DNA of 64,000 nt from Haliotis rufescens (lineage: Eukaryota). The first letter of the stretch is position 1; every line of letters begins with the position of its first letter. Positions 10,358 to 59,249 of the stretch are shown piece after piece. The position numbers were made by a program, and so were the translations under genes. The notes beneath the pieces were generated by a model. The model ran no database searches, was not told where the DNA came from, and was given only the letters and a program-made list of their open reading frames with translations. The stretch lies in the NCBI RefSeq assembly GCF_023055435.1, contig NW_025963779.1, positions 76,694,001 through 76,758,000 of the forward strand. Reading direction: 5' to 3'.

Positions 10358-11110
10358 AATGGATGTCAACTTCTTTATTATGAGGAACTCAACGTTTCGG
10401 AGTATCTACTTACTCCTTCATCAGTTATGTATGGATGTCAACTTCTTTATTATGAGGAACTCAACGTTTCGGAGTATCTACCTACTCCTTCATCAGTTAT
10501 GTATGGATGTCAACTTCTTTATTACGAGGATCTTAACGTTTCGGAGGATCTACTTACTCCTTCATCAGTTATGTATGGATGTCAACTTCTTTATTATGAG
10601 GAACTCAACGTTTCGGAGTATCTACTTACTCCTTCATCAGTTATGTATGGATGTCAACTTCTTTATTATGAGGAACTCAACGTTTCGGAGTATCTACCTA
10701 CTCCTTCATCAGTTATGTATGGATGTCAACTTCTTTATTATGAGGAACTCAACGTTTCGGAGTATCTACTTACTCCTTCATCAGTTTTGTATGGATGTCA
10801 ACTTCTTTATTATGAGGAACTCAACGTTTCGGAGTATCTACTTACTCCTTCATCAGTTATGTATGGATGTCAACTTCTTTATTATGAGGAACTCAACGTG
10901 TCGGAGTATCTACTTACTCCTTCATCAGTTATGTATGGATGTCAACTTCTTTATTATGAGGAACTCAACGTTTCGGAGTATCTACCTACTCCTTCATCAG
11001 TTATGTATGGATGTCAACTTCTTTATTATAAGGAACTCAACGTTTCGGAGTATCTACTTACTCCTTCATCAGTTATGTATGGATGTCAACTTCTTTATTA
11101 TGAGGAACGT
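10358..11110 (-). repeat. 72-bp tandem repeat, about 10.4 copies, each with a hammerhead-ribozyme-like core on the - strand
   Basis: Minus-strand unit CATAA-CTGATGA-A-GGAGTA-AGTAGA-TACTCC-GAAA-CGTT-GAGTTCCTCAT-AATAAA-GAAGTTGACATCCATA. TCATCAG recurs every 72 bp from 10418 to 11066. The confidence is for the repeat; ribozyme activity is unproven. Confidence 0.9.
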
Positions 11111-11139
11111 GAATAATCAGAACATCGAAAATACATTGT

Positions 11140-11650
11140 TGAATGCCTAACACGGGAAGCTCAAACATCTTTACTGTATTGCAGCATGTAATAAATTAAT
11201 CAAGTAGAAATTGTGATACCGTGATTCTTAAATGCCTAACAGACGAAACTTGTGTTAATGTTGAATGTATTGCAGCATGTAAGAAATTAATCAAGTAGAA
11301 ATTGTGATACAGTGATTGTTAAATGCCTAACAGACGAAACTTGTGTTAATGTTGAATGTATTGCAGCATGTAATAAATTAATCAAGTAGAAATTGTGATA
11401 CCGTGATTCTTAAATGCCTAACAGACGAAGCTTGTGTTAATGTTGAATGGATTGCATCATGTAATGAATTAATCAAGTCGAAATTGTGATACCGTGATTC
11501 TTAAATGCCTAACAGACGAAACTTGTGTTAATGTTGAATGTTTTGCAGCATGTAATAAATTGATCAAGTAGAAATTGTGATAACGTGATTGTTAAATGCC
11601 TGACGGACGAAACTTATAAAATGTTGAATGCATTACAGGACGCAATAAAG
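11140..11650. repeat. 91-bp tandem repeat, about 5.5 copies, upstream of CYP copy A
   Basis: Unit AATGCCTAACAGACGAAACTTGTGTTAATGTTGAATGTATTGCAGCATGTAATAAATTAATCAAGTAGAAATTGTGATACCGTGATTCTTA; period 91 (11231 to 11322). Confidence 0.95.
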
Positions 11651-12019
11651 TAAGTATGTAAGCATCTATTAATTAAGTATAAATTGTGATGAAATATGTT
11701 TTATTTAATTCAAGAAGGCTTCATTATATTCGCTGTGGATATATGTTCTGTTAAGCTTGGACCCTACTGAATCCATTAAAATGATATTAAAACATATATT
11801 TCACACGTATACTGTAAGGTAAAACATCAATATGTATGTCGCATTCTAAAGCTGGCATAACGAGATGTGTGCTTTAGTGTTATACATGACACACGTAAAG
11901 AAAGGGCAAACAAACATGGCGATCGCCTGGGTTGGTAGGGGCAGTGTGACGAGTGGACAATGGACGAGTCTAAATGTATTACCCCTACCTTTACCAGTTA
12001 TGGCCTGATCCAGGAGCTG

Positions 12020-12150
12020 TTACTTTAAATACCATTTAAGACCATCTGTATAACTATACACAAGTTCGATATTTGACAGAAGTGCTGTATCGGTTGTGAC
12101 ACACGGTCGACCAAACAAGTCCGAGTAGACGTCAGTTCGAGGGCACACTG
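12020..12150 (+). promoter_or_regulatory. Candidate core promoter of CYP copy A (TTTAAATA, GACGTCA, TCAGTT Inr-like)
   Basis: Short motif matches 60-190 bp upstream of the ATG; this block is deleted in copy B. No TSS data. Confidence 0.3.
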
Positions 12151-12210
12151 TGGTGCACTGGGTTACAAAAAGCATCAGCGAGATAACCTACATCCATTCG
12201 GCAACTAGAC

Positions 12211-15200
12211 ATGGCAGCCATGTTAAATCAAAGCAATGCTTCCATTATGGCTGCTGTCGCACTGCTGGCGGGACTGTTGATGTTCAATACATCTCTGATA
12301 CTAGTGTTTTTCACTGTATTACTAATTCTATGGCTGTCAACGCGGCGTCACCCTGGACTTCCCCCCGGGCCCCCTCTTCTACCACTGGTGGGCAACATTT
12401 TTCAAATGGATGCCGATCCCCGAGTGACTTTCAGCAAACTGCGACGTCAGTATGGCAACATCTTCAGCGTGTACATCTTCCACAAGCCCGTCATCGTCCT
12501 CAACGGCTACAATGTCCACAAAGAGGCCCTGGTCAAGAACGCTGATGTTTTCTCAGACAGGCCTCACTCCTTCCTATCGGATATCTTTGGTCACAACAAA
12601 GGTAGGTAACTGTAGATTTTGGTGTATGTAGTGGCGTGTGAGCGTACTTTATGCCGATTTTAGCACTATTCCTGCAATATCACGGCGGGAAGCCTTCGGG
12701 GGAATGTAGTGTTGAATGAGGCATGTTTCCAATACATTGAAGGGAGTAGGGATCTGAATGTTACTTCGTAAATATTAAATTCGAGAAGTATATCTTCAAC
12801 TAGCTTTCCCGTGAATATTGTGGACCCTCTTTAGCATGGAAGAATGAATATGTTAATATATGCATGGCGTCACATGTCACTAAGACGAATGAAAGGCCAA
12901 GGAAGAAAAACTCACACACACGATTGATTATGAGCTGATCGCTACGATTAGTGAAGCTAAATAAATAAAAGCAAACGTAAATATCTGCAAATGTTTGGAA
13001 GTGTCAAGTGATACACAAAATGTGTAAATATAGGCCAGAATAACGTATATGACAACTATAATAACAGTAGTGATTATTGAAACCTCATACTAGTACATAT
13101 ACAAATACAAGTAGGATATCTTTACAACATCGTTTTCCGATTGATAGGAGCATTATTGGTATGCATGCAAACATATTGATATGCTTACTTATGCATGTCG
13201 TCGTTTGTCAAGGAGATTGCGTTAACACATAAATAATAAGCAAACATGGCGGACCTCTAAGATTGTTGAGTGAATGGTCGAGTCCATATTTATTGCTCGG
13301 GTACTTGCCCGTCTCCTACCCGACCCGGGTGCTCGTACTTCAGACAGCGTGAAGGAGTAAAGCTCCACAAAAGTTCGACATTTGTCGTGAATCTTTTGTG
13401 ACTAAATAGCAAACTATTCATATTATTTACCAAATTAAAGTTTTAAAAAAAGGTGACAGTATAACAGATTTGCAATATATACATAATAGAATGCGTATTA
13501 TGCATATGCATTATGTATGTTATACATTAAGCCACTTCAATTGTGTTGAGGCCTGTGAAGATCCGGGTTATAGTAGGTCTTCAGCAAGAGGCGCCTAACG
13601 GGGTCGGGTGGAGCGATGCTCATGAGGTCAATCACTGGATTGTCTGGTCCAGACTCGATTATTTACAAACCGCCGTCATGTAGCTTGAATATTGCTGAGT
13701 GCGGCGTTAAACAACAAACAAACAAACACTGCCGTCCAGTGTGTAGTTACTATGTTCTTCATTCTTATTTATATCATAAATATAAAAAACACCAGAAGAA
13801 CCACACAGCTTCATCATTCCATGACGATGTCAACAAATAACATTATATGTAAATATGCTTTATATTACAGGAATATTAAGCACCAACGGCTCTACATGGA
13901 AAGACATGAGAAAGTTCGCTGTCACCACTCTCAGAGAGTTCGGGGTGGGAAGGTCAACCATTGAAGAGAAAATACAGCAAGAACTGGATAAACTTTTGAA
14001 AGCATTTGAGGATGAAGGTTCGAATGAGTTTGATTGTAAACGACTTGTCCACAATGCTACGTCTAATATCGTTTCTGACCTTTGTTTCGGAAAGCATTAT
14101 GAATATAATGACCCACGATTCATCAGGCTGCTAGACGCAGTAGAGGAGATAGTTTCTGATTTAAGAGCTGCTAACGTTTTGGATGTGTTTCCAGCTGTGA
14201 GATTTCTACCGGGAGATTTCTTTAACTATAAACGCCTTATGAGAAACATCCAAGTACTGGAGAAAGAAGTAGCTAAACACATTGAGGAACACGTCAACAA
14301 CTACGACGAAGATGAACCCGTTGAAGATTTCACCTCCGCTTTCCTCAAAGAGGTGCGACACCGCAAGCAAAGAGACGAGACTTTTGATGGTAAAATGAAT
14401 TATATATTATGAGTTAGTGTATTTATGGTATACACTTATAAGCAAATTGGAATAAAATACTTTCAGTATAAAGGACGGCTTTAAAAAAACACCTGTCTTT
14501 GATGTTTTTGATTTAGTCAGAATCATACAATGTCCTTTTGGAATTCAAACTCTAAGAATTTTATCGCTTTTATTTGACAATTCTGTATCTTTTTTATAGA
14601 TAATTTACAATATCTCCGATGGCACCTTTATACTAAGCATAAAGATCCATCAGCGAAAACCTTAAAAAACTGAAGAAATGAAAAAGTCTTTGAATCCATC
14701 CATCGTCATACATTTTGTGCATTGTCTTAATAATTAATGCATTATCATTTCTGTTTAGAAAGTCACCTATCGATGGTTCTGATTGATATCTTCACACCCG
14801 GAACGTTTGATAATGCCAACAGCATCAAATGGTCACTACTACACCTACTGCATTACCCGGAAGTTCAGGAGAAGTGTTTCCAGGAGATCCAAGAACACGT
14901 CGGGTTCAACAGACGACCCTCCATGAAGGACAAGACAAGCCTTCCTTACGTAGAAGCCACGCTTTCAGAGGTCCTGAGACACGCAGACATGGTACCCACA
15001 GGGGTGCCACACACAGTCCCCCACGATGTCCAGTTCCATGGCTACACGTTCCCAAAGGGTGTCACTATTATTCCTATGTTGAACTCTGTGCTTCATGATC
15101 CGGCAACGTGGGGGGATCCACAAAATTTCAGACCTGAACGCTTCCTTGACCATGAAGGGAAATTCCGGAAGAGGGATGAATTAGTTACTTTTTCTCTTGG

Positions 15201-15848
15201 TAAGAATCTTTTGCTGATGGTATCAACGTTTTTTGCTGCCTGACGTTTTTAATAATAATAAGCAATAGAATATTTAACGTGAGAACTCATGTATCAAACT
15301 CAATATTCAAATCTGGAAAACAGCGTTATAACTACCCTCCGCAAATGGGCACGTTAAATTGAGTTTGTTCACATTGTAGTGACCTATAAACAAGAGTCCT
15401 ATAAGGATTGGTTGGTTGTTTTTTGTTTAATGTCAGTAGTTTCTGAGAAAACTTGTCCCTATTGCACACAGTATGCATATAGACATTACCATGTTAACCG
15501 AGACAATATAGTCGATGGTCATTCGTTTTCTTCATGTATTACAACATGAACTAATAATGTATGAAACATACATGTGTAGTCAAAACCCACAACTCTGCCT
15601 AACAAGAGATATGTCATTCGTGTACATCATTTAATGATCTTTCCTCGTGTTTAATCTGGTTTGCAGGACGCCGAGCATGTCCTGGGGAGTCACTAGGCCG
15701 CATGGAACTGTTCCTGGTTCTTACCACATTGATTCAGAGGTTCAAGTTCGTCCCTCCGAGTGGAACGCTGCAACCACTGATAGGAATAATGGGCATTGCC
15801 AACAATGCTCCCCCTTTCAAGTGCAAAGCCATTCCAAGGAACATTTGA
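12211..15848 (+). CDS. Cytochrome P450, clan 2 (CYP2-like), copy A; exons 12211-12601, 13871-14389, 14759-15199, 15667-15848; 510 aa; atypical I-helix
   Basis: N-terminal TM anchor, PPGP, WKDMR (C-helix WxxxR), EVLR (ExxR), FRPERF and [11 protein letters not shown] (heme Cys). Three GT-AG phase-1 introns splice into an open 1533-nt frame. Confidence 0.95.
13553..13728 (+). mobile_element. SINE-like family 4, deleted copy, in CYP-A intron 1
   Basis: GTGAAGATCCGGGTTA...GAATATTGCTGAGTGCGGCGTTAAACAACAAACAAAC; also present in B intron 1 (about 21388-21563). Confidence 0.75.
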
Positions 15849-16259
15849 GAGGATAGCCACTGTTTTAGAATGGTTACATTGCTTAGCACCTTATGGTTCC
15901 ATGTGAAACGAATTTTGGTTTTATTTGAGAAATTTGAGATGTCCAAATGCCAACTTTGTAGTTTATCTGCGTGTAAGTACAATATAGCATTATATGATAA
16001 AACATTTCATTAAATAGAGTTACATGTATGGATGAGATATATCCTTTGAACTTTTTTAAGTGTCCTCCTGAAATCCCGTCGCAACCTGGTATTTCGTAGT
16101 TTTCAAATCTCTTTTATCCACAGGGATTTCCTGTGCCTGGTTTTCGCAAGATTTCGGAAATTAAAACCTTTTACTACCTTTCTCTTGCCTCTTGTATCTT
16201 GGCATGTAATAACTTAATATAGAGAAAAGTAAATGTTATGAAGTAGTTTAACTTCCAGG

Positions 16260-16296
16260 AGAGAGAGAGAGAGAGAGAGACAGAGAGAGAGAGAGG

Positions 16297-16332
<36 letters not shown>

Positions 16333-16335
16333 GAG
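16260..16335. repeat. (GA)n/(GACA)n compound microsatellite
   Basis: Read directly from the sequence; a shorter version occurs at 44563-44609. Confidence 0.9.
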
Positions 16336-16821
16336 ATGACCTTTGAGACTCAGTACGGGGCCTGTTGTGACCTACTTTACCGGTGAAAGTCATGATACAA
16401 AGCCCAGGGTTGTGCTCGAGGTCACCTGATGTGTACCCCGGTAATACAAACAAGTGTCCCGAGTCGCGGTGTGCGCTCAGAAAAAGCACTAACTGCAGTC
16501 CACACATTCGGGGGTGGTTGGGGGGTGGAGGGGTGGAGGAGATAAAATTATGTAAATATGTCGCATTTTCAACACCCAGAGTGCAGTTCAGTTGCATCTG
16601 AATAAAGCATGTTATACCCATATTGACGTAAAAACACGTTAACTTTGTTTCACCTAAATAACGCTCACGCAATGTCACGGATTGGTGAAAATCGACGTCT
16701 AGGCCCAGTGGATATGTTGCAAATAGGAATGGTGCAAAACGAAGTTACCATACGTTATTATTTTCATTGAAACACAATATCATCTCTTTGAAGGCGTTAT
16801 CTGCAAAAGGGCAACGCTCAT

Positions 16822-17373
16822 GTTTGTTTGTTTGTTGTTTAACGCCGCACTCAGCAATATTCAAGCTATATATGACGGCGGTCCGTAAATATTCGAGTCT
16901 GAACAATCCGTTGAGTCACATCGTGAGCATCGATCAAAGGAATTGGGACATAATAACATGCATCAACCAAGTCAGCGAGCCTGACAACCCGATCCCGTTA
17001 GTCTCCTCTTACGACAAGCATGGGTTACTGAAGACCAATTCTAACCAAGATCTTCACTGGGGCTCACATGTACTAGTCAAATAAGACGTCTGGCATGAAA
17101 TAATTGTCAATCAGTTGGGAGTAAAGTGATTCATATACCATGTCCTGTTTCAGCTATGTGACGGCGGTCGATAAATAATCGAGTCTGGATCAGACAATCT
17201 AGTGATTGACATCATGAGCATCGATACACGCAATTGAGATGCGATTGACATGCCTCAACAAAGTCAGCGAGTCTGACCACCTGATCCCGTTAGCCGCCTC
17301 TTACGACAAGCATAGTCGCCTTTTACGGCAAGCATGGGTTGCTGAAGACCTATTCTACCCCGGATCTTCACAG
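16822..17373 (-). mobile_element. Two SINE-like family 4 copies
   Basis: (TTTG)n tail, CTCAGCAATATTC, CTCTTACGACAAGCATGGGTT, GGATCTTCAC; duplicated at about 24755-25250 and inverted at 39652-40205. Confidence 0.75.
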
Positions 17374-17377
17374 GTCG

Positions 17378-17935
17378 ACAACACTCATGACTTGCCACAG
17401 GCCGGTCATCCACATGTGACGTCAAGTCAAAAAGACAATTATATTCGGTTGGTGCATCTACGGAATCGACACCAAACTGCCACAACTCGGTTGAGACGAA
17501 TTAGTGGCTGAACCGTACGCAACCGGTTGAGGGAACATAACATCTGGCCCCGACATTGAGCTAAACGCCCAATTTTGCTTCCGCATCACCGTCAGGCACG
17601 CCTGGTGTAAAACAGCATCTGAGGTTCAGAAGACAAGAATGGACCAATATTCTGTTCACAGACGAAGCAGGTTTCATCTGGACAGCGTCCAGGATAACAT
17701 TTGAGCGACGTTCGCGTTGCTAAAAATCGTCAGTTTGGGGGTAGGAAGTGTGATGGTATGGGGTGGCATCACAACACATGGGAGAACACAACTCATCATT
17801 GAATGCCGTACGCTACCGGGGCGACATTGTTTAACATGATGTTCTACCCTTTGTGCAAATATATATTCAATAAATGTTTCTGAGTTGTTTCAGTGTATGT
17901 CGTACTTATTTAATCCCTTGTGAAACGTCCATGGG
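17378..17935 (+). mobile_element. Decayed Tc1-like transposase fragment
   Basis: DLPQAGHPHVTS..DNYIRLVHLRNRH, ILFTDEAGF and SVMVWGGIT motifs in broken frames. Confidence 0.75.
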
Positions 17936-17954
17936 GGTTAAACAGCAAACAAAC

Positions 17955-19079
17955 AATTTTCTTGACGTTTTACATTCTCCAAGAACCATGTTAAATTATG
18001 TCGAAATGTTTGATTTTTCAATTTTGTATATCACTGTCCCACACGGCAAACTTAACGAAAAACTTAATTCCATTTTCTATGAACGTTGTGACCATGGATA
18101 TATTTATACGGCGATATTTTGCCTCCTAGTTATGAATTAAATAAAATAGCTGGCTTTTGAAATGTAGTTAAAAAACATATTGGCTCTCACGCACGCACAC
18201 ACGCACAATATCAACTTGTCGGTCCCTTAAACCTCTGTCGTCAAATGTTCAGGACAATTTGTCAAAAAAAGAAAGTATATGTCATCTGAAGTTGAATGTA
18301 AAAACAATATGTGAAATGCTTGACTTCCTCGTTGATGAAACGGGGGCACGGGTGGCCCAGTCGTCTAAGGCGCCGCGATTCGCTGTGCAGAGTTGCGTCC
18401 CTTGGGCACGCCAGAAACCTATGATTGTGGGTTCGAATCCCGGTTCGCCCCAATTATGTTTCTAGGTTTGTCAGCACCATACCCGTGCTCGTGGGTTTCA
18501 CCGAAGTGGTAAACGTCTGAGACCTGCATCACTTCGGGCTTTCCTCCCACATTAAGCTGACACGCCGTGATATAACTGGAATACTGTTAAAAGCGGCGTT
18601 AAACCCAACTCACTCACTCACTCATTGATGAAACAGCTGTGTGAAATTTGGGGATAAGACATAATGGGCACCAATTGTGATCCCCTCCTTAATGATCTAT
18701 TTCGTAATAATGCATATGGATCGGAATGTCTAAATCAGTTCAGATTGGCAAACTCAAAACAAGGGAGTTTAACTTAAGCTCCAGGTATATGGATGATTTG
18801 ATATCGTTCAATAACCGCCTAGTTGCCAATTCCTTCCACTGATTTACAAACCTGAACTAGAAATAAAAGAGACCAGTGTAAATTTCATCTGCTTATTATT
18901 TATATTTAGGCAAAAAAAGGTTCAGTTAGTGACAACAACTATTCACAGGACAAGGGGTATGACAAGAGGGATGACTTCAATTTCCTTTTATGTCGAGCAA
19001 TGTTCCTGCAGCTCCACAACTTTTTAGGTACAGGAGAGCATGTTCTTGCTACGAATATATCAAAGAGCGTCATACGACT
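17955..19079 (+). mobile_element. Decayed Penelope-like reverse transcriptase fragment, cut at the tandem-duplication junction
   Basis: FDFSxLYxTVPH, MGTNCDPLL, RYMDDLISFNN, PELEIKET, YDKRDDFNF and SSNVPAAP motifs in broken frames. Confidence 0.7.
18341..18622 (+). mobile_element. Full-length tRNA-derived SINE family 1, present only in the unit-A copy
   Basis: A box TGGCCCAGTCG and B box GGTTCGAATCC; (CACT)n tail; TSD TTGATGAAAC; empty site at about 26565 and about 38300. Confidence 0.9.
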
Positions 19080-19650
19080 TGTGTTAACGTTGAATGTATT
19101 GCAGCATGTAATAAATTAATCAAGTAGAAATTGTGATACCGTGATTCTTAAATGCCTAACAGACGAATCTTGTGTTAATGTTGAATGTATTGCAGCATGT
19201 AATAAATAAACCAACAGAAATTGTGATACCGTGATTGTTAAATGCCTAACAGACGAAGCTTGTGTTAATGTTGAATGTATTGCAGCATGTAATAAATTAA
19301 TCAAGTAGAAATTGTGATACCGTGATTCTTAAATACCTAACAGACGAAGCTTGGTTTACTGTTGAATGTTTTGCATCATGTAATAAATTAATCAAGTAGA
19401 AATTGTGATACAGTGATTGTTAAATGCCTAACAGACGAAGCTTGTGTTACTGTTGAATGTATTGCAGCATGTAATAAATTAATCAAGTAGAAATTGTGAT
19501 ACCGTGATTCTTAAATGCCTGACAGACGAAACTTGTGTTACTGTTGAATGTATTGCAGCATGTAATAAATTAATCAAGTAGAAATTGTGATACCGTGATT
19601 GTTAAATGCCTGACAGACGAAGCTTATAAAATGTTGAATGCATTACAGGA
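19078..19650. repeat. 91-bp tandem repeat, about 6 copies, upstream of CYP copy B
   Basis: Same unit as 11140-11650. Confidence 0.95.
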
Positions 19651-20084
19651 CGCAATAAAGTAAGTATGTAAGCATCTATTAATTAAGTATAAATTGTGAT
19701 GAAATATGTTTTATTTAATTCAAGAAGGCTTCATTATATTCGCTGTGGATATATGTTCTGTTAAGCTTGGACCCTACTGAATCCATTAAAATGATATTAA
19801 AACATATATTTCACACGTATACTGTAAGTTTAAACATCAATATGTATGTCGCATACTAAAGCTGGCATAACGAGATGTGTGCATTATATTATACATGACA
19901 CACGTAAAGAATGAGCAAACAAACATGGCGATCGTCTGGGTTGGTAGGGGCAGTTGCAATGGACGAGTCTAAATTTATTACCCCTACCTTTACCAGTTAT
20001 GGTCTGATCCAGGAGCTGTTACTGTGGTGCACTGGCTTACAAAAAGCATCAGCGAGATAACCTACATCCATTCGGCAACTAGAC

Positions 20085-23000
20085 ATGGCAGCCATGTTAA
20101 ATCAAAGCAATGCTTCCATTATGGCTGCTGTCGCACTGCTGGCGGGACTGTTGATGTTCAATACATCTCTGATACTGGTGTTTGTCACTGTATTACTAAT
20201 TCTATGGCTGTCAACGCGGCGTCACCCTGGACTTCCCCCCGGGCCCCCTCTTCTACCACTGGTGGGCAACATTTTTCAAATGGATGCCGATCCCCGAGTG
20301 ACTTTCAGCAAACTGCGACGTCAGTATGGCGACATCTTCAGCGTGTACATCTTCCACAAGCCCGTCATCGTCCTCAACGGCTACAATGTCCACAAAGAGG
20401 CCCTGGTCAAGAACGCTGATGTTTTCTCAGACAGGCCTCACTCCTTCCTATCGGATATCTTTGGTCACAACAAAGGTAGGTAACTGTAGATTTTGGTGTA
20501 TGTAGTGGCGTGTGAGCGTACTTTATGCCGATTTTAGCACTATTCCTGCAATATCACGGCGGGAAGCCTTCGGGGGAATGTAGTGTTGAATGAGGCATGT
20601 GTCCAATACATTGAAGGGAGTAGGGATCTGAATGTTACTTCGTAAATATTAAATTCGAGAAGTATATCTTCAACTAGCTTTCAAGGATCCCGTTAATATT
20701 GTGGACCCTCTTTAGCATGGAAGAATGAATATGTTAATATATGCATGGCGTCACATGTCACTAAGACGAATGAAAGGCCAAGGGAGAAAAACTCACACAC
20801 ACGATTGATTATGAGCTGATCGCTACGATTAGTGAAGCTAAATAAATAAAAGCAAACGTAAATATCTGCAAATGTTTGGAAGTGTCAAGTGATACAAAAA
20901 TGAGTAAATATAGGCCAGAATAACGTATATGACAACTATAACAGTAATGATTATTGAAACCTAATACTAGTAAATAAACAAATACAAGTAGGATATCTTT
21001 ACAACATCGTTTTCCGATTGATAGGAGCATTATTGGTATGCATGCAAACATATTGATATGCTTAATTATGCATGTCGTCGTAGGTCAAGGAGATTGCGTT
21101 AACACATAAATAATAAGCAAACATGGCGGACCTCTAAGATTGTTGAGTGAATGGACGACCCGGGACCTGGTACTTCAGACAGCGTGATGGAGTAAAGCTC
21201 CACAAAAGTTCGACATTTGTCGTGAATGTTTTGTGACTAAATAGCAAACTATTTATATTATTTACCAAATTAAAGTTTTAAAAAAAGGTGACAGTGTAAC
21301 AGATTTGCAACATATACATAATAGCATGCGTATTATGCATATGCATTATGTATGTTATACATTAAGCCACTTCAATTGTGTTGAGACCTGTGAAGATCCG
21401 GGTTATAGTAGGTCTTCAGCAAGAGGCGCCTAACGGGGTCGGGTGGAGCGATGCTCATGAGGTCAATCACTGGATTGTCTGGTCCAGACTCGATTATTTA
21501 CAAACCGTCGTCATGTAGCTTGAATATTGCTGAGAGCGGCGTTAAACAACAAACAAACAAACACTGTCGTCCAGTGTGTAGTTACTATGTTCTTGATTCT
21601 TATTTATATCATAAATATAAAAAAACCCCAGAAGAACCACACAGCTTCATTATTCCATGACGATGTCAACAAATAACATTATATGTAAATATGCTTTATA
21701 TTATAGGAATATTAAGCACCAACGGCTCTACATGGAAAGACATGAGAAAGTTCGCTGTCACCACTCTCAGAGAGTTCGGGGTGGGAAGGTCAACCATTGA
21801 AGAGAAAATACAGCAAGAACTGGATAAACTTTTGAAAGCATTTGAGGATGAAGGTTCGAATGAGTTTGATTGTAAACGACATGTCCACACTGCTACGTCT
21901 AATATCGTTTCTGACCTTTGTTTCGGAAAGCATTATGAATATAATGACCCACGATTCATCAGGCTGCTAGACGCAGTAGAGGAGATGATTACTGATTTAG
22001 GAGCTGCAAACGTGTTGGATGTGTTTCCAGCTGTGAGATTTCTACCGGGAGATTTCTTTAACTATAAACGCCTTATGAGAAACATCCAAGTACTGGAGAA
22101 AGAAGTAGCTAAACACATTGAGGAACACGTCAACAACTACGAAGAAGATGAACCCGTTGAAGACTTCACCTCCGCTTTCCTCAAAGAGGTGCGACGCCGC
22201 AAGCAAAGAGACGAGACTTTTGATGGTAAAATGAATTATATATTATGAGTTAGTGTATTTATGGTATAATCTTTGATGTTTTTGATTTAGTCAGAATCAT
22301 ACAATGTCCTTTTGGATTTCAAACTCTAAGAATTTTATCGCTTTTATTTGACAATTCTGTATCTTTTTTATAGATAATTTACAATATCTCCGATGGCACC
22401 TTTATACTAAGCATAAGGATCCATCAGCGAAAAACTTTAAAAAACTGAAGACATGAAAAAGTCATTGAATCCATCCATCGTCATACATTTTGTGCATTGT
22501 CTTAATAATTAATGCATTATCATTTCTGTTTAGAAAGTCACCTATCGATGTTTCTGATTGATATCTTCACACCCGGAACGTATGATAATGCCAACAGCAT
22601 CAAATGGTCACTACTACACCTACTTCATTACCCGGAAGTTCAGGAGAAGTGTTTCCAGGAGATCCAAGAACACGTCGGGTTCAACAGACGACCCTCCATG
22701 AAGGACAAGACCAGCCTTTCTTACGTAGAAGCCACGCTTTCAGAAGTCCTGAGACACGCAGACATGGTACCCACAGGGGTGCCACACACAGTCCCCCACG
22801 ATGTCCAGTTCCAGGGCTACACGTTCCCCAAGGGTGTCACTATTATTCCTATGTTGAACTCTGTACTTCATGATCCGGCAACGTGGGGGGATCCACAAAA
22901 TTTCAGACCTGAACGCTTCCTTGACCATGAAGGGAAATTCCGAAAGAGGGATGAATTAGTTGCTTTTTCTCTTGGTAAGAATCTTTTGCTGATGGTATCA

Positions 23001-23903
23001 ACTTTTTTAGCTCCCTAACGTTTTTAATAATAATAAGCAATAGAATATTTAACGTGAGAACTCATGTATCAAACTCAATATTCAAATATGGAAAACAGCG
23101 TTATCACTACCCTCCGCAAATGGGCATGTTAAATTGAGTTTGTTCACATTGTAGTGACCTATAAACAAGAGTCCTATAAGGATTGGTTGGTTGTTTTTTG
23201 TTTAATGTCAGTAGTTTCTGAGAAAAGTTGTCCCTATTGCACACACTATGCATATAGACATTACCATGTTAACCGAGACAATATAGTCGATGGTCATTCG
23301 TTTTCTTTATGTACTACGAGTTAGTGAGTGAGTGAGTTGGGTTTAACGCCGCTTTTAACATTATTCCAGTTAATCATGGCGTGTCAGCTTTATGTGGGAG
23401 GAAAGCCCGAAGTGATGCATGTCTTAGACGTTTACCACCTCGGTGAAACCCACGAGCACGGGTATGGTGCTAACAAACCTAGAAACATAATTGGGGCGAA
23501 CCGGGATTCGAACCCACATAGGTTCTGGCATGCCCAAGGGACGCAACTCTGCACAGCGAATCGCGGCGCCTTAGACGACTGGGCCACCCGTGCCCCCTAT
23601 TACAACATGAACTAATAATGTATTAAACATACATGTGTAGTCAAAGCCTCTGCTAGACAAAAGATATGTCATTCGTGTACATCATTTAATGATCTTTCCT
23701 CGTGTTTAATCTGGTTTGCAGGACGCCGAGCATGTCCTGGGGAGTCACTAGGCCGCATGGAACTGTTCCTGGTTCTTACCACATTGATTCAGAGGTTCAA
23801 GTTCGTCCCTCCGAGTGGAACGCTGCAACCACTGATAGGAATAATGGGCTTTGCCAACAATGCTCCCCCTTTCAAGTGCAAAGCCATTCCAAGGAACATT
23901 TGA
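20085..23903 (+). CDS. Cytochrome P450, clan 2 (CYP2-like), copy B; exons 20085-20475, 21707-22225, 22534-22974, 23722-23903; 510 aa; atypical I-helix
   Basis: Same exon sizes and motifs as A; open frame; about 26 coding differences from A by eye. Confidence 0.95.
23318..23597 (-). mobile_element. SINE family 1 in CYP-B intron 3
   Basis: Reverse complement of 18341-18622; absent from intron 3 of A and C. Confidence 0.9.
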
Positions 23904-25254
23904 GAGGATAGCCACTGTTTTAGAATGGTTACATTGCTTAGCACCTTATGGTTCCATGTGAAACGAATTTTGGTTTTATTTGAGAAATTTGAGATGTTCT
24001 AGATGTCAATCATCAATGTATATTTCAGTATAAGAGCAGTGTCAGTTCGGAAACAATATCTAATATCTTGCTTCGACTGTCCTGGTTTAACACATTGTAA
24101 AATGAAAGAGAATGTGTGCTCCATTTTTATTGGTTTAAAAGAGATATCATCCCCGGAAATATTTAAGCCATTACTCTGTGTATGTATACTTGGCTTTACA
24201 AGTATATTTGGCAATCACACATTCTGTGACACATAAAACGTTCAGTTAAGAAACTCCTTTGTATTTGTTAAAGTGGCTTTTTGAACCTTTTTTTGTGTTA
24301 CTGGCAGATTATAGCTTTACATCATTCTATTCATTAGGAAATTTGCCAGATGTGAGGATTTCATTAAATAGAGTTACATGTATGGATGAGATATATCCTT
24401 TGAACTTTTTTATGTGTTCTCAGTGTATTTCGTAGTTTTCAAATCTCGTATAGGAGTATTGTGACAAATAAAATGATTGAGATAAAATTATGTAAATATG
24501 TCGCATTTTCAACACCCAGAGTGCAGTTCAGCTGCATCTGAATAAAGCATGTTATACCATATTGACGTAAAAACACGTTTGTTTCACCTAAATAACGCTC
24601 ACGCAATGTCACGGATTGGTGAAAATCGACGTTTACGCCCAGTGGATATGTCGCAAATAGGAATGGTGCAAAACGAAGTTACCATACGTTATGATTTTCA
24701 TTGAAACACAATATCATCTCTTTTAAGACGTTATCTGCAAAAGAGCGACGCTCATGTTTGTTTGTTTGTTGTTTAACGCCGCACTCAGCAATATTCAAGC
24801 TATATATGACGGCGCTCCGTAAAAATTCGAGTCTGGACAATCCGTTGAGTGACATCGTGAGCATCGATCAAAGTTAGTCTCCTCTTACGACAAGCATGGG
24901 TTACTGAAGACCAATTCTAACCAAGAACTTCACTGGGGCTCACATGTACTAGTCAAATAAGACGTCTGGCATGAAAGAATTGTCAATCAGTTGGGAGTAA
25001 AATGATTCATATACCATGTCCTGTTTCAGCTATGTGACGGCGGTCGATAAATAATCGAGTCTGGATCAGACAATCTAGTGATTGACATCATGAGCATCGA
25101 TACACGCAATTGAGATGCGATTGACATGCCTCAACAAAGTCAGCGAGCCTGACCACCTGATCCCGTTAGCCGCCTCTTACGACAAGCATAGTCGCCTTTT
25201 ACGGCAAGCATGGGTTGCTGAAGACCTTGTGTACCCCGGATCTTCACAGGTCGG

Positions 25255-25915
25255 CAACACTCATGACTTGCCACAGGCCGGTCATCCACATGTGACGTCA
25301 CGTCAAAAAGACAATTATATTCGGTTGGTGCATCTACGGAATCGACACCAAGCTGCCACAACTCGTACCATCCAAGGGTTGAGACGAATTAGTGGCTGAA
25401 CCGTACGCAGCCGGTTGAGGGAACATAACATCTGGCCCCGACATTGAGCTGAACGCCCAATTTTGCTTCCGCATCACCGTCAGGCACGCCTAGCTTGGTG
25501 TAAACATCATCTGAGGTTCAGAAGACAAGAATGGACCAATATTCTGTTCACAGACGAAGCAGGTTTCACCTGGACAGCGTCCAGGATAACATTTTAGCGA
25601 CGTTCGCGTTGCTAAAATTCGTCAGTTTGGGGGTGGAAGTGTAATGGTATGGGGTGGCATCACAACACATGGGAGAACACAACTCATCATTGAATGCCGT
25701 ACGCTACCGGGGCGACATTGTTTAACATGATGTTCTACCCTTTGTGCAAATATATATTCAATAAATGTTTCTGAGTTGTTTCAGTGTATATCGTACTTAT
25801 TTAATCCCTTGTGAAACGTCCATGGAGGTTTACGAGTACGTGACACGATAATTCATGCATTGTAAATTTATTGAAAGTGTTACTTTTCGTTTAACGATAC
25901 TTTGTAACATGCATG
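25255..25915 (+). mobile_element. Decayed Tc1-like fragment (unit-B copy)
   Basis: Paralogous to 17378-17935. Confidence 0.7.
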
Positions 25916-26189
25916 GAGTCTGTTTAAGAAAGACATCAAATGCATCTGCTCCATCTGACAGCCCAACATGAAAAGTTTGTGGTTGTTCCCACTGTCAAGG
26001 AACATAAAGGAACATAAAGGAACATAATATCAATAGGACTGTCGTCATCGTTTCCCGGATCTCAATGCGTATGTCAATCACTGGATTGTCTGGTCCAGAC
26101 TCGCCCGGCACCATATATCTAAGATATTGCCTTAAACAGCGTTAACCAACGTTAAACAGCTTGAAACAGCGTTAAACAGCAAACAAACA

Positions 26190-27200
26190 ATTTTCTTGAC
26201 GTTTCACATTCTCCAAGAACCATGTTAAATTATGTCGAAATGTTTGATTTTTCAACTTTGTATATCACTGTCCCACACGGCAAACTTAACGAAAAACTTA
26301 ATTCCATTTTCTATGAACGTTGTGACCATGAATATATTTATACGGCGATATTTTGCCTCCTAGTTGTGTATTAAATAAAATAGCTGGTTTTGCAAATGTA
26401 GTTAAAAAACATCTTGTCTCTCAGGCACGCACGCACGCACAATATCAATTTGTCGGTCCCTTAAACCTCTGTCGTCAAATGTTCAGGACAATTTGTCAAA
26501 AAAAGAAAGTATATGTCATCTGAAGTTGAATGAAAAAACAATATGTGAAATGCTTGACTTCCTCATTGATGAAACAGCTGTGTGAAATTTGGGGATAAGA
26601 CATAATGGGCACCAATTGTGATCCCCTCCTTAATGATCTATTTCGTAATAATGCATATGGATCGGAATGTCTAAATCAGTTCAGATTGGCAAACTCAAAA
26701 CAAGGGAGTTTAACTTAAGCTCCAGGTATATGGATGATTTGATATCGTTCAATAACCGCCTAGTTGCCAATTCCTTCCACTGATTTACAAACCTGAACTA
26801 GAAATAAAAGAGACCAGTGTAAATTTCATCTGCTTCATATTTATATTTAGGCAAAAAGATTCAGTTAGTGACAACAACTATTCACAAGACAAGGGGTATG
26901 ACAAGAGGGATGACTTCAATTTCCTTTTATGTCGAGCAATGTTCCTGCAGCTCCACAACTTTGTAGGTACAGGAGAGCATATTCTTGCTACGAATATATC
27001 AAAGAGCGTCATACGACTCCTGATCAAAACTTGTTTGACCAGGGTTGCAACATGCAAGGCCTTGGCGTGTCCTTGACGTGGATGTCTTTTCAAAATTTGA
27101 CACATCAGAAACAAAAAAGAAGTGTGATGAAATTCCTTATTTTAACTTGTACCATATGTTCCCGTGTTTTTTCAAATGAACAATTGACTTGCCTTTGCAT
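26190..27200 (+). mobile_element. Decayed Penelope-like RT fragment (unit-B copy, longer)
   Basis: YMDD, YDKRDDFNF and SSNVPAAPQLCRYRRAYS motifs. Confidence 0.7.
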
Positions 27201-41772: not shown

Positions 41773-43666
41773 TCAAATGTTCCTTGGAATGGCTTTGCAC
41801 TTGAAAGGGGGAGCATTATTGGCAATGCCCATTATTCCTATCAGTGGTTGCAGCGTTCCACTCGGAGGGACGAACTTGAACCTCTGAATCAATGTGGTAA
41901 GAACCAGGAACAGTTCCATGCGGCCTAGTGACTCCCCAGGACATGCTCGGCGTCCTGCAAACCAGATTAAACACGAGGAAAGATCATTAAATGATGTACA
42001 CGAATGACATATCTTTTGTTTAGCAGAGTTGTGGGTTTTGACTACACATGTATGTTTCATACATTATTAGTTCATGTTGTAATACATGAAGAAAACGAAT
42101 GATGGTCGACTATATTGTCTCGGTTAACATGGTAATGTCTATGTGCATAGTGTGTGCAATAGGGACAACTTTTCTCAGAAACTACTGACATTAAACAAAA
42201 AACAACCAACCAATCCTTATAGGACTCTTGTTTATAGGTCACTACAATGTGAACAAACTCAATTTAACGTGCCCATTTGCGGAGGGTAGTGATAACGCTG
42301 TTTTCCAGATTTGAATATTGAGTTTGATACATGAGTTCTCACGTTAAATATTCTATTGCTTATTATTATTAAAAACGTCAGGCAGCAAAAAACGTTGATA
42401 CCATCAGCAAAAGATGCTTACCTAGAGAAAAAGCAACTAATTCATCCCTCTTCCGGAATTTCCCTTCATGGTCAAGGAAGCGTTCAGGTCTGAAATTTTG
42501 TGGATCCCCCTACGTTGCCGGATCATGAAGCACAGAGTTCAACATAGGAATAATAGTGACACCCTTTGGAAACGTGTAGCCATGGAACTGGACATCGTGG
42601 GGGACTGTGTGTGGCACCCCTGTGGGTACCATGTCTGCGTGTCTCAGGACTTCTGAAAGCGTGGCTTCTACGTAAGAAAGGCTGGTCTTGTCCTTCATGG
42701 AGGGTCGTCTGTTGAACCCGACGTGTTCTTGGATCTCCTGGAAACACTTCTCCTGAACTTCCGGGTAATGCAGTAGGTGTAGTAGTGACCATTTGATGCT
42801 GTTGGCATTATCAAACGTTCCGGGTGTGAAGATATCAGTCAGAACCATCGATAGGTGACTTTCTAAACAGAAATGATAATGCATTAATTATTAAGACAAT
42901 GCACAAAATGTATGACGATGGATGGATTCAATGACTTTTTCATTTCTTCAGTTTTTTAAGTTTTTCACTGATGGATCTTTATGCTTTGTATAAAGGTGCC
43001 ATCGGAGATATTGTATCTATAAAAAAGATACAGAATTGTCAAATAAAAGCGATAAAATTCTTAGAGTTTGAAATCCAAAAGGACATTGTATGATTCTGAC
43101 TAAATCAAAAACATCAAAGACAGGTGTTTTTTTAAAGCCGTCCTTTATACTGAAAGTATTTATTCCCATTTGCTTATAAATGTATACCATAAATACACTA
43201 ACTCATAATATATAATTCATTTTACCATCAAAAGTCTCGTCTCTTTGCTTGCGGTGTCGCACCTCTTTGAGGAAAGCGGAAGTGAAGTCTTCAACGGGTC
43301 CATCTTCGTCGTAGTTGTTGACGTGTTCCTCAATGTGTTTAGCTACTTCCTTCTCCAGTATTTGGATGTTTCTCATAAGGCGTTTATAGTTAAAGAAATC
43401 TCCCGGTAGAAATCTCACAGCTGGAAACACATCCAAAACGTTAGCAGCTCCTAAATCAGTAAACATCTCCTCTACTGCGTCTAGCAGCCTGATGAATCGT
43501 GGGTCATTGTATTCATAATGCTTTCCGAAACAAAGGTCAGAAACGATATTAGACGTAGCATTGTGGACAAGTCGTTTACAATCAAACTCATTCGAACCTT
43601 CATCCTCAAATGCTTTCAAAAGTTTATCCAGTTCTTGCTGTATTTTCTCTTCTATGGTTCCCACCC
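41773..43666 (-). pseudogene. CYP2-like copy C pseudogene; partial exon 2 about 43666-43226, exon 3 42862-42422, exon 4 41954-41773
   Basis: Near-identical to A/B. TGG to TAG nonsense at 42510-42512 (DPAT*GDP), before PERF and the heme Cys. Exon 1 and the 5' part of exon 2 are missing. Confidence 0.92.
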
Positions 43667-48860: not shown

Positions 48861-51450
48861 TCATTTACACATGGCCCTTGGTACAGCCCGAATCGTAAAG
48901 GTGGGAGCTGCATTGGTAATGCCAAGTACTCCTTTCAAAGGTGTTAACGGTCCATCGTCTGGGAGGAACTGGAACTTCTGTATCATGGCCACCAAGAACA
49001 GGAACAACTCCATACGGGCCAAGGACTCTCCAAGACACACTCTGCGACCTGAAGATGAATGAGTTAGTGAGATAGCGCAAATCAATCTGAAGTAGTGTCA
49101 TTGTTGCCTGTCTCAAAGTTATCATATACGAGTGTTGCCAGTTCATGATGAGATAAGCTTTACCTTTGATATTTGTCGACCGGTAATGTGAAGAAATGTT
49201 ACAGCATGGTTTGTGTGAAATGTAACTGCATAATTACCCATAGAGAAGGGGATGAACTCATCTCTCTTCAGGTACTTCCCTTGGTCATCTAGAAATCGCT
49301 CGGGTCTGAAGTTTTGTGGATCACCCCACACAGTTGGATCATGCAGTACCGACTCCAAATTTGGTACGACAGTCACGCCCTTGGGGAACGTGTAGCCCCG
49401 AAACTGGACGTTGTGGAGTACACCGTGAGGAACTGCAAGTGGGGCTATGGTTGAGCATCTATGGACCTCGCTGATGGTGGCTTCGACGTAGGGAAGATCG
49501 GTCTTGTCCTTCATACTAGGTTTTCTACTTTCGCCGATGTGTTCTTGTATCTCCCTGAAACACTTCTCCTGTACTTCCGGGTTGTGCAGGAAGTAAAGAA
49601 GAGTCCAACGGATTGTGGTCGCTGTTGTCTCAGTTCCAGCTATGAATAAATCTCTCACCGTTTTCACCAGGTGACCTCCTAACAGAACAAAAAAACATGA
49701 CAATCAGCAGAAAGGCAGCATACAGTGGATACTCAGTCGATTTTTTTTGGGCCAGACATAACTGGAATAGTCAATTGATGCACGAGAGAACGGCAAAACG
49801 ATCATCAGCATAGAAACAGGTTTACTCCTTTCAGAAATATATTTTCTCTACAAGAAATATGTTTGCGTAAGCACATTGTTTCTGCTTAACATTGATATTG
49901 TATTTTAATTCAAGATGAGGTGAAATGGGGTTTAACGTCGCGTTCAAAATGNNNNNNNNNNNNNNNNNNNNNNNNNNNNNNNNNNNNNNNNNNNNNNNNN
50001 NNNNNNNNNNNNNNNNNNNNNNNNNNNNNNNNNNNNNNNNNNNNNNNNNNNNNNNNNNNNNNNNNNNNNNNNNNNNNNNNNNNNNNNNNNGTTTTCATAG
50101 TGCTTGCCCACTGAGATACCACCTCTAACGTCTTTTGGTATGACGCGGCCGGGAATCGAACCCACGACCTTCCGCTCTCCGGGCAGACACTCTATCCAAT
50201 TTAGGCTTAACCTCAAATGTAAATATAATTCCATATAATCATGGAGTATGGTGTTATTAAGATAGTTCTTTGTCAACTTACTATCAAACGTCTCGTCGCT
50301 CCCACGGAGTTTCATTTCCTTGATGTAAGCTGTGATGAAATCGTCCACATTGTCTTCGTCGTAATTATTGAAATGTTCCTCAACATCTTTTTCAATTTCA
50401 CCCTTTTCTACTATAGCAATATTTTGCATAAGTTTTTTAAATTTGAAAAAGTCTCCTGGGATAAATCTCACAATTGGAAACATGTTCAGGATGTTTGCTG
50501 CCCCGAGTGTCGCCAAGATTATATCTGTAGATTTTAAGAACTTTACAAACCTCGGATCAGTATATTCGAATTGCTTCCCCAAACAAACAGCGCATATGAT
50601 ATTGGCCACGGCGTTGTGCACGAGTCGTTTACAGTCAAAGGCAAGTCCATCCTTGTCCTCAATTGCTTTCAAGAAGACCGTCAACTCGTCGTGTATTTTG
50701 GCCTCCAGCAGGGACCTCCCCATCCCAAAATCTCTGAGTGTTGTTAAAGCAAATTTTCTTTGTTCTTTCCAGTGGGCACCTGAGGTCCCCGCTACCCCTG
50801 AAATGGTGAAAGTAAGGTGAGGTGAAATGTCGCGCTGAAGATTATTTCACTCATATTGTCACTTGTATGCACGTGTGTAATTTGGCTGCTTGTACTCGTC
50901 CGGACTTTTGCCGATTTTATAGTACTAGCCTACTGACATACCATGCGGCAGTTTAACATGGATACACCATTCAGAAACATTATACTGACAACGAGCTGGC
51001 CTCTCCCGTTGTTAACCTCCTATTCCAAGCGCAATGAGAAAAAGATCACAAAATACCATTTCACATACCTTTGCCTCGTGCAAAAAACTCCGTAATAAAC
51101 GATTTTGGTCTTTCTGAGAAAACGTCACCATTCTTGACAAGGGCCTCTTTGATGGCGCTGTACCCGCTCAGGACAATAACTGGCTCATTGAAGATGTACA
51201 CGCTGAAGATGTCGCCGTATTGACGTCGCAGTTTGCTGAAAGTCACTCGGGGATCGGCATCCATTTGAAAAATGTTGCCCACCAGTGGCAGAAGAGGGGG
51301 GCCGGGGGGAAGACCGGGGAGACGCCGCGTTGACAGCCACAGAATTAGTAATACAGTGATACACACCAGTATCAGAGATGTATTAAACATCAACAGTCCC
51401 GCCAATAGAGTTATGGCTGCCAAAGTTGCAGCAGAGCCGGAGCTGACCAT
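48861..51450 (-). CDS. Cytochrome P450, clan 2 (CYP2-like), paralogue E; exons 51450-51069, 50797-50282, 49678-49238, 49048-48861; 508 aa; canonical I-helix
   Basis: PPGP, WKEQR, DLFIAGTETT, EVHR, FRPERF and PFSMGRRVCLGE. GT-AG phase-1 introns at the same positions as A; 1527-nt open frame. Confidence 0.95.
49915..50195 (-). mobile_element. SINE family 3 spanning an N gap in CYP-E intron 2
   Basis: Head (GGTTCGATTCCCGGCCGCGTCATACC on the - strand) and tail (GAGGTGAAATGGGGTTTAACGTCGCG) lie on either side of the gap. Confidence 0.75.
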
Positions 51451-59000: not shown

Positions 59001-59249
59001 ACAAAGGATCGGTGTATTCAAACCGTTTTCCGGAAACCACAGAACTGATGATGTTCGCTACAGCGTTGTTGAGAACGCGGTTACAATTGAAGTCCGTGTG
59101 GACACATTCGTGGATGGCCTGAAGAAAGAACGATAACTCTTCCTGTATTGCATCCTCGAGAATGGTTTTGCTCATTCCGAATTCTCTGAGAGTGGTAATA
59201 CTAAACTTTCTATGTTCCCGCCAGGTGGCGCCCGTTGAAAACACAAGAC
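56076..59249 (-). CDS. Cytochrome P450, clan 2 (CYP2-like), paralogue F, partial; exons 59249-58725, 57894-57454, 56257-56076; exon 1 not found in the window
   Basis: WREHR, DLFIAGSETT, EILR, FRPDRF and PFSLGHRACLGE; same phase-1 intron positions; open frame through exons 2-4. Confidence 0.92.
56410..57300. repeat. Composite 42/37-bp minisatellite (79-bp dimer) in CYP-F intron 3
   Basis: Units GCCGACAGAGACAGGGATCATATAATAAATACAGATCATTAT and GCCGACAGAGACAGGGATCGGATACACAGATCCTTAT, alternating in the centre. Confidence 0.95.

Follow-up and report, generated by a model that had tools for sequence, protein, structure and literature searches.

An abalone-specific group of CYP2-clan cytochromes P450 with aspartate at the conserved I-helix threonine position: candidates for altered oxidant chemistry

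An acid-alcohol pair in the I-helix is typical of the cytochrome P450 superfamily, although not obligatory, and the hydroxyl of its conserved threonine normally stabilizes the iron-hydroperoxo intermediate. Natural P450s driven by peroxide are rare and are valued as cofactor-free biocatalysts; those known to us are bacterial (CYP152, CYP255). The stretch of Haliotis rufescens chromosome DNA analyzed here (64,000 nucleotides, hereafter the window) contains a tandem cluster of four-exon CYP2-like P450 genes, some of which replace this pair, and it raises the question of whether these genes encode working enzymes and, if so, which oxidant they use. A search of the literature on the accessions, on abalone CYP2s, and on I-helix variants in mollusc CYPomes found no published account of these abalone proteins.

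Splice sites and translation place gene A at 12211..15848 on the forward strand, with exons at 12211-12601, 13871-14389, 14759-15199, and 15667-15848, and gene B lies at 20085..23903 on the same strand (exons 20085-20475, 21707-22225, 22534-22974, and 23722-23903). Both frames are open, as a preliminary description of the locus had noted, and 510 aa long, and the models are identical to the RefSeq proteins XP_046336526.2 (P0340) for A and XP_046336525.1 (P0161) for B. Copy C, at 41773..43659 on the reverse strand, is a pseudogene. Exon 1 is missing, as are the 85 nt with which exon 2 opens. What survives is an exon 2 remnant (43659-43226), exon 3 (42862-42422), and exon 4 (41954-41773), and in exon 3 an in-frame TAG (42510..42512, reverse strand) takes the place of the tryptophan of DPATWGDP; its RefSeq model is a 197-aa fragment, XP_046336537.2. 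Two canonical paralogues are also encoded on the reverse strand. Gene E (48861..51450; exons 51450-51069, 50797-50282, 49678-49238, and 49048-48861) has the motif AGTETT, an open frame of 508 aa, and a place in the sister clade, and gene F (56076..59249) has the motif AGSETT and exons 2-4 at 59249-58725, 57894-57454, and 56257-56076, with no exon 1 found within the window. The introns are phase-1 GT-AG, and all five copies (A, B, C, E, and F) share an exon 3 of exactly 441 nt, the length given earlier.

In-frame reading of all five copies confirmed that A, B, and C carry PGT[F/Y]DN where the neighbors E and F have AG[T/S]ETT. The I-helix oxygen-binding groove of A (14785..14826, forward strand) presents Pro317, Phe320, Asp321, Asn322, and Asn324 in place of Ala, Glu, Thr, Thr, and Thr. 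That of B (22560-22601, forward strand) is as in A but with Tyr for Phe, PGTYDN falling at 22572-22589, and that of C (42836-42795, reverse strand; core 42824-42807) is the same as in A. The equivalent stretches read DLFIAGTETTATTI in E (49652-49611, reverse strand) and DLFIAGSETTATVL in F (57868-57827, reverse strand). When exon 3 and the full protein were compared with PDB chains by phmmer, the I-helix aligned without gaps to the solved structures of CYP2C8, 2A13, 2E1, and 2B4. In CYP2B4 numbering, the Pro corresponds to Ala298, the Phe/Tyr to Glu301, the Asp to Thr302, and the Asn to Thr303; Asp321 likewise aligns with CYP2C8 Thr301. Where the superfamily has (A/G)Gx(D/E)(T/S), A, B, and C have PGT(F/Y)D. 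The preliminary description had read this as a missing acid-alcohol pair. The glutamate is indeed gone from an intact clan-2 P450, but the change is not a simple loss, as a carboxylate now occupies the threonine position. The informative feature is this aspartate exactly at the position of the threonine, to which the earlier reading gave no weight.

Outside the groove, the translations of A and B keep the features expected of a microsomal P450. WxxxR, ExxR (EVLR), PERF, and the Cys loop are intact, in agreement with the first description, and the loop (FSLGRRACPG) is divided by intron 3 after FSLG. Protein A matches PF00067 over profile positions 1-460 of 462 (E 2.9e-116, 389 bits), and a hydrophobic N terminus (anchor) and a Pro-rich hinge, PPGPPLLP, are present. 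The AF2 model (pLDDT 91.7) has an I-helix unbroken at 304-335 and gave Foldseek TM scores of 0.85/0.93 to CYP2C8, 2D6, 2E1, 2R1, and 2B4. The best PDB matches were all CYP2 (2B4 at 6.7e-99), with CYP17 and CYP1 coming next. By similarity of sequence and predicted fold, A and B are assigned as clan 2, CYP2-like microsomal P450s; a formal CYP family name follows the 40%/55% rule of the nomenclature committee. We take the patch that docks reductase and cytochrome b5 to be CYP2B4 R122, R126, R133, R422, K433, and R443, from the mutagenesis literature, and its basic equivalents (K141, K145, R152, K441, R452, and R462) are kept in 12/12 members of the clade described below.

Relatives were sought with a word-indexed search, and a trimmed alignment was used. 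The motif, found to be kept in related species, defines a clade whose 13 proteins come from H. rufescens, H. cracherodii, H. asinina, and H. rubra; the tree places this clade as sister to canonical E (support 100/100, stem 0.26). Position 321 is Asp in all 12 full-length members and in the fragment P0156, where the 114 canonical relatives have Thr (107) or Ser (7). At position 320, which is never acidic in the clade, the 12 full-length members have Tyr (5), Phe (4), or Thr (3), as against Glu (107) or Asp (7) in the canonical set; every one of the 114 canonical relatives sampled has an acid at 320 and an alcohol at 321. The stretch PGT[F/Y]DNANSIKW is identical between species, whereas the whole proteins are only 78% identical. 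Groove positions 316-325 show consensus changes at 7 of 10 sites versus 35% overall (Fisher p=0.024). No motif-bearing protein appeared among the best 150 matches to exon 3 in a 50%-representative library. At the 50% clustering level, the abalone clade disappears into a canonical cluster.

A lineage that is relaxed or decaying and plays no part in catalysis, its frames open by chance or through recent duplication, would account for the death of copy C by truncation and its in-frame TAG, for the several H. rubra models that are partial, and for an A-B dN/dS of ~0.47 that is not significantly <1 (binomial p=0.09). The wider sampling speaks against it. The aspartate is invariant in thirteen members from four species, each species has at least two intact copies of ~510 aa with full-length open frames, and the heme and structural motifs are all intact, FSLGRRACPG, EVLR, and PERF being invariant or near-invariant in 12 clade members. 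The cross-species identity of 78% is also close to the 83% of canonical E orthologues, so that orthologue divergence resembles that of the canonical paralogue. As the main reading, decay is ruled out by this cross-species conservation, and we regard it as very improbable in any form. Because the 13-protein clade has 100% support, the aspartate is invariant, and the heme-binding motifs and docking residues are kept, the PGT[F/Y]DN proteins form a constrained and probably functional subfamily.

The history of the copies differs from the one first proposed, in which a recently amplified lineage had been copied four times. The motif is older than the split of the four Haliotis species, and blastn, tblastn, and a whole-genome search found three copies in the window and in the whole genome alike: A, B, and the dead C, which is 5'-truncated, stop-bearing, and inverted. 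A blastn comparison of the A region with the whole window, together with TRF, delimited two tandem duplication units of ~7.9 kb on the forward strand (11175..27018), the A unit at 11175-19079 and the B unit at about 19095-27018. TRF placed a 91-bp tandem array at the opening of each, upstream of the gene; Rfam returned no match at the gathering threshold in this upstream repeat region. The same blastn search located a third unit, inverted and 5'-truncated, at 43659-37851. Amplification peculiar to the PGT[F/Y]DN lineage was considered and ruled out, as the same extended cluster holds three copies of the canonical E type and five of the F type.

Which oxidant would such a groove serve? Given a constrained replacement of the acid-alcohol pair in an intact P450, the altered oxidant chemistry suggested in the preliminary description is a reasonable hypothesis; its peroxygenase option is the best precedented, and its isomerase option, in the style of CYP74, CYP5A1, or CYP8A1 and without a redox partner, fares less well. 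In the scheme that we propose, A and B would be functional members of an abalone-specific microsomal CYP2-clan subfamily whose groove went from Ala-Gly-Thr-Glu-Thr-Thr to Pro-Gly-Thr-(Phe/Tyr)-Asp-Asn in a single rebuilding that predates the divergence of the Haliotis species sampled. The Asp321 carboxylate would sit over the distal heme face as a general acid-base, and H2O2 or an organic hydroperoxide would yield compound I directly, by peroxygenase or peroxide-shunt chemistry. Electrons from P450 reductase may still be accepted, making a hybrid enzyme like CYP255 GcoA, and the substrates might be dietary algal metabolites or oxylipins. By analogy with precedents discussed below, we tentatively favor Asp321 as a distal acid-base catalyst of peroxide-driven or hybrid peroxygenase/monooxygenase chemistry. 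A point against the peroxygenase reading is that Asp321 has one methylene fewer than the Glu found in the natural precedent.

Almost as likely is an ordinary microsomal monooxygenase, using O2 and electrons from P450 reductase, in which the groove change would tune substrate specificity and not the oxidant. Asp321 might then deliver protons, alone or with Thr319 and an ordered water, or might mainly bind a polar or cationic group of the substrate. The clade has conserved the docking residues, the Cys loop, and an N-terminal anchor with a PPGP hinge, all of which fit such an enzyme; the docking residues in particular argue for continued use of a redox partner and count against the peroxygenase reading. 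The missing acid alone is no argument against monooxygenation, because CYP2D6 naturally has Val308 there and is still a monooxygenase (PDB "V308E mutant" titles; P0114 motif). Nor is a carboxylate at the threonine position incompatible with O2 chemistry, because GcoA, with Gln-Glu and hence Glu there, is a genuine, working NADH-dependent monooxygenase (PMC11842817). On the other hand, Thr-to-acid mutants of other P450s gain peroxide activity and lose much of their monooxygenase activity (PMC11842817, PMC13659817). The uniform Thr/Ser at the Asp321 position in 114/114 canonical relatives sampled is also hard to square with mere tuning, as is the joint change, and subsequent freezing, of five groove residues that rank among the most conserved.

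The clade might instead rearrange peroxides or endoperoxides without O2 or a redox partner, as do CYP74 allene oxide synthase, CYP5A1, and CYP8A1, with fatty-acid hydroperoxides binding the ferric heme directly. CYP74, CYP5A1, CYP8A1, and CYP152 all lack the canonical acid-alcohol pair, so that replacement of the O2-activating pair is a shared trait, and the macroalgae eaten by abalone are rich in oxylipins. With no basic docking residue lost and no alteration of the Cys loop, however, we consider an isomerase of this kind unlikely. By sequence and fold, the proteins are plainly of the CYP2 clan, and the PDB matches at E<=1e-60 included no CYP74, CYP5A1, or CYP8A1 chain. Their Cys loop matches that of CYP2B4 with no gaps and has no insertion of the type found in CYP74. 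CYP74, CYP5A1, CYP8A1, and CYP152 belong to other clans and do not depend on reductase; their own groove residues and altered Cys-loop regions are not seen in the abalone clade, which keeps the docking patch. The I-helix Arg-Pro with which CYP152 binds the substrate carboxylate is absent from the clade, whose groove has F/Y-D and no Arg.

On the sequence evidence, then, the abalone proteins make good candidates for altered oxidant chemistry in a P450 that is both natural and of animal origin. A bolder and more doubtful extension is that they represent a natural animal P450 peroxygenase, an ER-bound CYP2-clan enzyme in which Asp321 would make compound I from H2O2 or from lipid or algal hydroperoxides through the same Thr-to-acid switch at which engineers arrived on their own; a diet of peroxide-rich macroalgae might have favored such an adaptation. 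With two intact genes (A and B) next to their canonical sister E, the claim is open to direct testing. If Thr-to-Asp was fixed, the neighboring Glu lost, and this state kept under constraint across an abalone radiation, the clade would amount to a natural experiment. It would show how the oxygen-activation machinery can be rewired in a eukaryotic microsomal scaffold and would offer engineers a groove co-adapted as a whole (Pro317, Phe/Tyr320, Asp321, Asn322, and Asn324) in place of a point mutation. Should the enzymes be ordinary monooxygenases, the "essential" threonine would prove replaceable by Asp in a CYP2 enzyme.

Among known systems, the closest are other molluscan CYP2-clan P450s ("CYP2U1/2J/2C/2R1-like," for example E and F), which have the same four-exon structure and exon sizes. 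Identity is 63% to E and 33-36% to vertebrate CYP2 enzymes, CYP2B4, 2C8, 2D6, 2E1, and 2R1 having the same fold (TM 0.85-0.93). These CYP2 relatives share the anchor, ExxR, PERF, Cys loop, and docking residues with the abalone clade and differ from it in the I-helix groove; even CYP2D6, without the acid, keeps the Thr that the clade has also replaced. The bacterial aromatic O-demethylases of CYP255, SyoA and GcoA, have a Gln-Glu "amide-acid" at the acid-alcohol position, and Glu253 of SyoA is stated to be the structural equivalent of the conserved Thr (PMC11842817). SyoA runs only by the peroxide shunt, and reverting its Gln-Glu to Glu-Thr abolishes that peroxide-driven activity (PMC11842817). 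CYP255 and the abalone clade thus both have a carboxylate at the Thr-equivalent position and have both lost the preceding acid, but the CYP255 enzymes are unrelated soluble bacterial P450s with Glu, not Asp, preceded by an amide where the clade has Phe, Tyr, or Thr at position 320. With animal CYP2s as its nearest relatives, the clade is, by sequence, an analogue of CYP255 and not a member. Replacing Thr with Asp or Glu is a standard conversion of a P450 to a peroxygenase, as in CYP199A4 T252E and CYP154C5 T248D, and the introduced acid promotes H2O2 heterolysis through acid-base catalysis on the distal side (PMC13659817). These enzymes and CYP119-perox7 carry the same I-helix Thr-to-acid change as the abalone clade; whereas they are laboratory mutants of bacterial or archaeal proteins, the abalone proteins are natural, eukaryotic, and membrane-bound and combine the change with four others in the groove.

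According to a six-frame scan, tblastn, and splice-site reading, CYP2-like P450 genes are clustered in the window; all have a four-exon structure with phase-1 GT-AG introns. Two of them, gene A (12211-12601, 13871-14389, 14759-15199, and 15667-15848) and gene B (20085-20475, 21707-22225, 22534-22974, and 23722-23903), lie on the forward strand and have open frames of 510 amino acids that exactly match the H. rufescens database proteins P0340 (XP_046336526.2) and P0161 (XP_046336525.1), each annotated as "vitamin D(3) 25-hydroxylase-like". Spliced models were searched exon by exon, with these identical database proteins as full-length queries; RefSeq protein models are themselves predictions. 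Copy C (41773-43659, reverse strand) has lost exon 1 together with the initial 85 nt of exon 2, and its reading frame is interrupted by an in-frame TAG (42510-42512). RefSeq annotates it as a 197-amino acid protein (XP_046336537.2, "cytochrome P450 2C3-like") whose terminus coincides exactly with this TAG, so a pseudogene has been modeled as a gene; copy C is dead. The reverse-strand genes E (open, 508 amino acids) and F (exons 2-4 located) are canonical. With exon 1 of gene A as the tblastn query, no match to exon 1 of gene F was found in 59250-64000; this exon may be diverged, repeat-displaced, or absent. A DDE_3 (Tc1/mariner-like) transposase remnant occupies two adjacent frames at 61863-62507 (reverse strand), its Pfam score of 25.7 bits falling under the curated cut-off of 28.6.

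Genes A, B, and C share an altered I-helix groove. In gene A, the 14-residue groove stretch lies at 14785-14826; copy C is the same, and gene B differs only by Tyr for Phe, whereas the corresponding stretches are DLFIAGTETTATTI in E and DLFIAGSETTATVL in F. All five have an exon 3 of 441 nt. The phmmer alignments, gapless for exon 3 against CYP2C8, 2A13, and 2E1 and covering the whole protein against CYP2B4, leave no doubt about the register: Pro317, Phe320, Asp321, and Asn322 correspond to Ala298, Glu301, Thr302, and Thr303 of CYP2B4. An AlphaFold2 model built from a 126-row alignment (mean pLDDT 91.7, pTM 0.88) has a continuous I-helix from 304 to 335, is matched by Foldseek to CYP2C8, 2D6, 2E1, 2R1, and 2B4 (TM 0.85/0.93), and the Pfam p450 match runs end to end. 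The motif difference noted in the preliminary description is confirmed. The acid-alcohol pair (canonical Glu-Thr) had been described there as lost; the acid is indeed gone at position 320, but the alcohol position now carries a new acid, Asp321, a replacement in which all three codon bases differ.

The decisive evidence comes from comparison among proteins, which revealed a clade spanning four Haliotis species. An exon-3 fragment search initially gave the H. rubra fragment P0156 (AGAIDI), and full-length protein searches then gave the other members: P0341 and P0342 of H. cracherodii (PGT[Y/F]DN); P0162 (PGTYDN), P0167 (PGTFDV), P0276 (AGTTDA), and P0277 (GGTTDG) of H. asinina; and P0223 (PGTYDN), P0344 (PGMYDN), P0278 (PGTFDV), and P0211 (AGTTDA) of H. 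rubra. No member of the PGTFDV and AGTTDA sub-lineages was found in H. rufescens. In a maximum-likelihood tree, the clade has 100/100 support, its stem measures 0.26 substitutions per site, and its sister is the canonical E clade; the nearest non-Haliotis proteins are canonical and at most 45% identical. The alignment of 126 sequences separates the two groups at both catalytic positions. All 12 clade members carry Asp at 321, where the 114 canonical relatives all have an alcohol (107 Thr, 7 Ser); at 320, the clade shows Tyr, Phe, or Thr and the canonical proteins show an acid (107 Glu, 7 Asp). Asn324 and Ser329 are invariant within the clade, and the 12 residues PGT[F/Y]DNANSIKW are identical across species despite an overall orthologue identity of 78%, close to the 83% of E orthologues. 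Consensus changes affect 7 of the 10 groove positions 316-325 versus 35% of the whole protein (Fisher p = 0.024). This burst of groove change followed by conservation indicates a functional shift, and decay of the lineage is very improbable. A search of the accessible literature returned nothing on the clade proteins or on the groove motif in molluscs.

Contrary to the four copies first proposed, a whole-genome six-frame search of H. rufescens found the motif only at A, B, and C. Of the next 27 exon-3 matches inspected, 25 are canonical, all at 67% identity or less, and the motif was absent by pattern search from the other two. By blastn, A and B are tandem units of ≈7.9 kb and C is an inverted, 5'-truncated unit. 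Over 1533 coding positions, A and B show 26 differences, with an amino acid change in 16 codons and a synonymous change in 10; their introns are ≈97% identical. By NG86, dN is 0.0137 and dS 0.029, and the resulting ratio of ≈0.47 does not fall significantly under 1 (p = 0.09). B groups with one H. cracherodii gene in the tree, so the A/B duplication may predate the split of the two species, although gene conversion could blur this pattern. Tandem arrays of a 91-bp unit (11175-11653 and 19078-19663; 5.3 and 6.5 copies, 91% identity) lie ≈0.4 to 0.6 kb upstream of the A and B start codons, mark the 5' ends of the duplication units, and may be promoter-proximal repeats. A 72-bp unit (10.5 copies, 96% identity) occupies 10354-11108, ≈1.1 kb upstream of gene A, and Rfam gave nothing at gathering score in 9800-12200. 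Within exon 1, A (aligned part 12266-12563) and canonical E (51404-51107) are 89% identical in DNA and 76% in protein, whereas the other exons, at 54 to 64% protein identity, are beyond blastn detection; this contrast points to gene conversion between the two lineages or to a strongly constrained anchor exon.

Amplification peculiar to the motif lineage was rejected: the cluster extends past the window (G000:C1:76741739-76804330; loci L007-L009, L011-L014, and L016) and includes three copies of the E type and five of the F type; inverted pairs occur among them, and one F-type copy reads IVGSETT. As a whole, this CYP2 array is large and has undergone recent rearrangement. Elsewhere, locus L026 (1315-2817, reverse strand; G000:C13:27231401-27232849) and its neighbors at C13:27234850 and C13:27237951 are intronless CYP2-like genes, with single-exon open frames of 500 to 527 amino acids versus four exons in the cluster genes; L026 shares 98% identity with a protein of H. 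cracherodii named "2C23-like", and the three are possibly retrogene-derived.

Outside the groove, clade members show little or no variation in ExxR, PERF, and the Cys loop, or at K141, R144, K145, R152, K441, R452, R453, and R462, which we take from CYP2B4 mutagenesis literature to be the equivalents of residues implicated in its reductase/b5 docking and heme-propionate binding. The protein also has a membrane anchor and a Pro-rich hinge. It is very probably a heme-binding ER protein that continues to face a redox partner. The clan-2 sequence, unaltered Cys loop, and retained docking patch fit a CYP74/5A1/8A1-style isomerase less well, and this reading is unlikely; the altered chemistry proposed in the preliminary description is partly supported and can be sharpened to an acid at the Thr position.

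In rational design, P450 peroxygenases are commonly made by putting Asp or Glu in place of the conserved Thr (e.g., CYP199A4 T252E and CYP154C5 T248D); the introduced side chain serves as the distal acid-base catalyst that H2O2 heterolysis requires (PMC13659817). By analogy with these mutants and with the CYP255 enzymes described below, we tentatively propose that Asp321 acts as a distal acid-base, enabling peroxide-driven or hybrid catalysis. The main rival is only slightly less likely: the enzyme would be an ordinary monooxygenase dependent on POR, with Asp321 serving to relay protons or to bind substrate. This reading accords with the retained docking surface, with CYP2D6, which naturally lacks the acid, and with the precedent of GcoA. 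GcoA and SyoA, bacterial CYP255 enzymes, have a Gln-Glu pair at the acid-alcohol position; SyoA demethylates by the peroxide shunt only, reversion to Glu-Thr destroying this activity, and GcoA is a hybrid monooxygenase/peroxygenase (PMC11842817). Where these enzymes have Gln-Glu, the abalone clade has Tyr/Phe/Thr-Asp.
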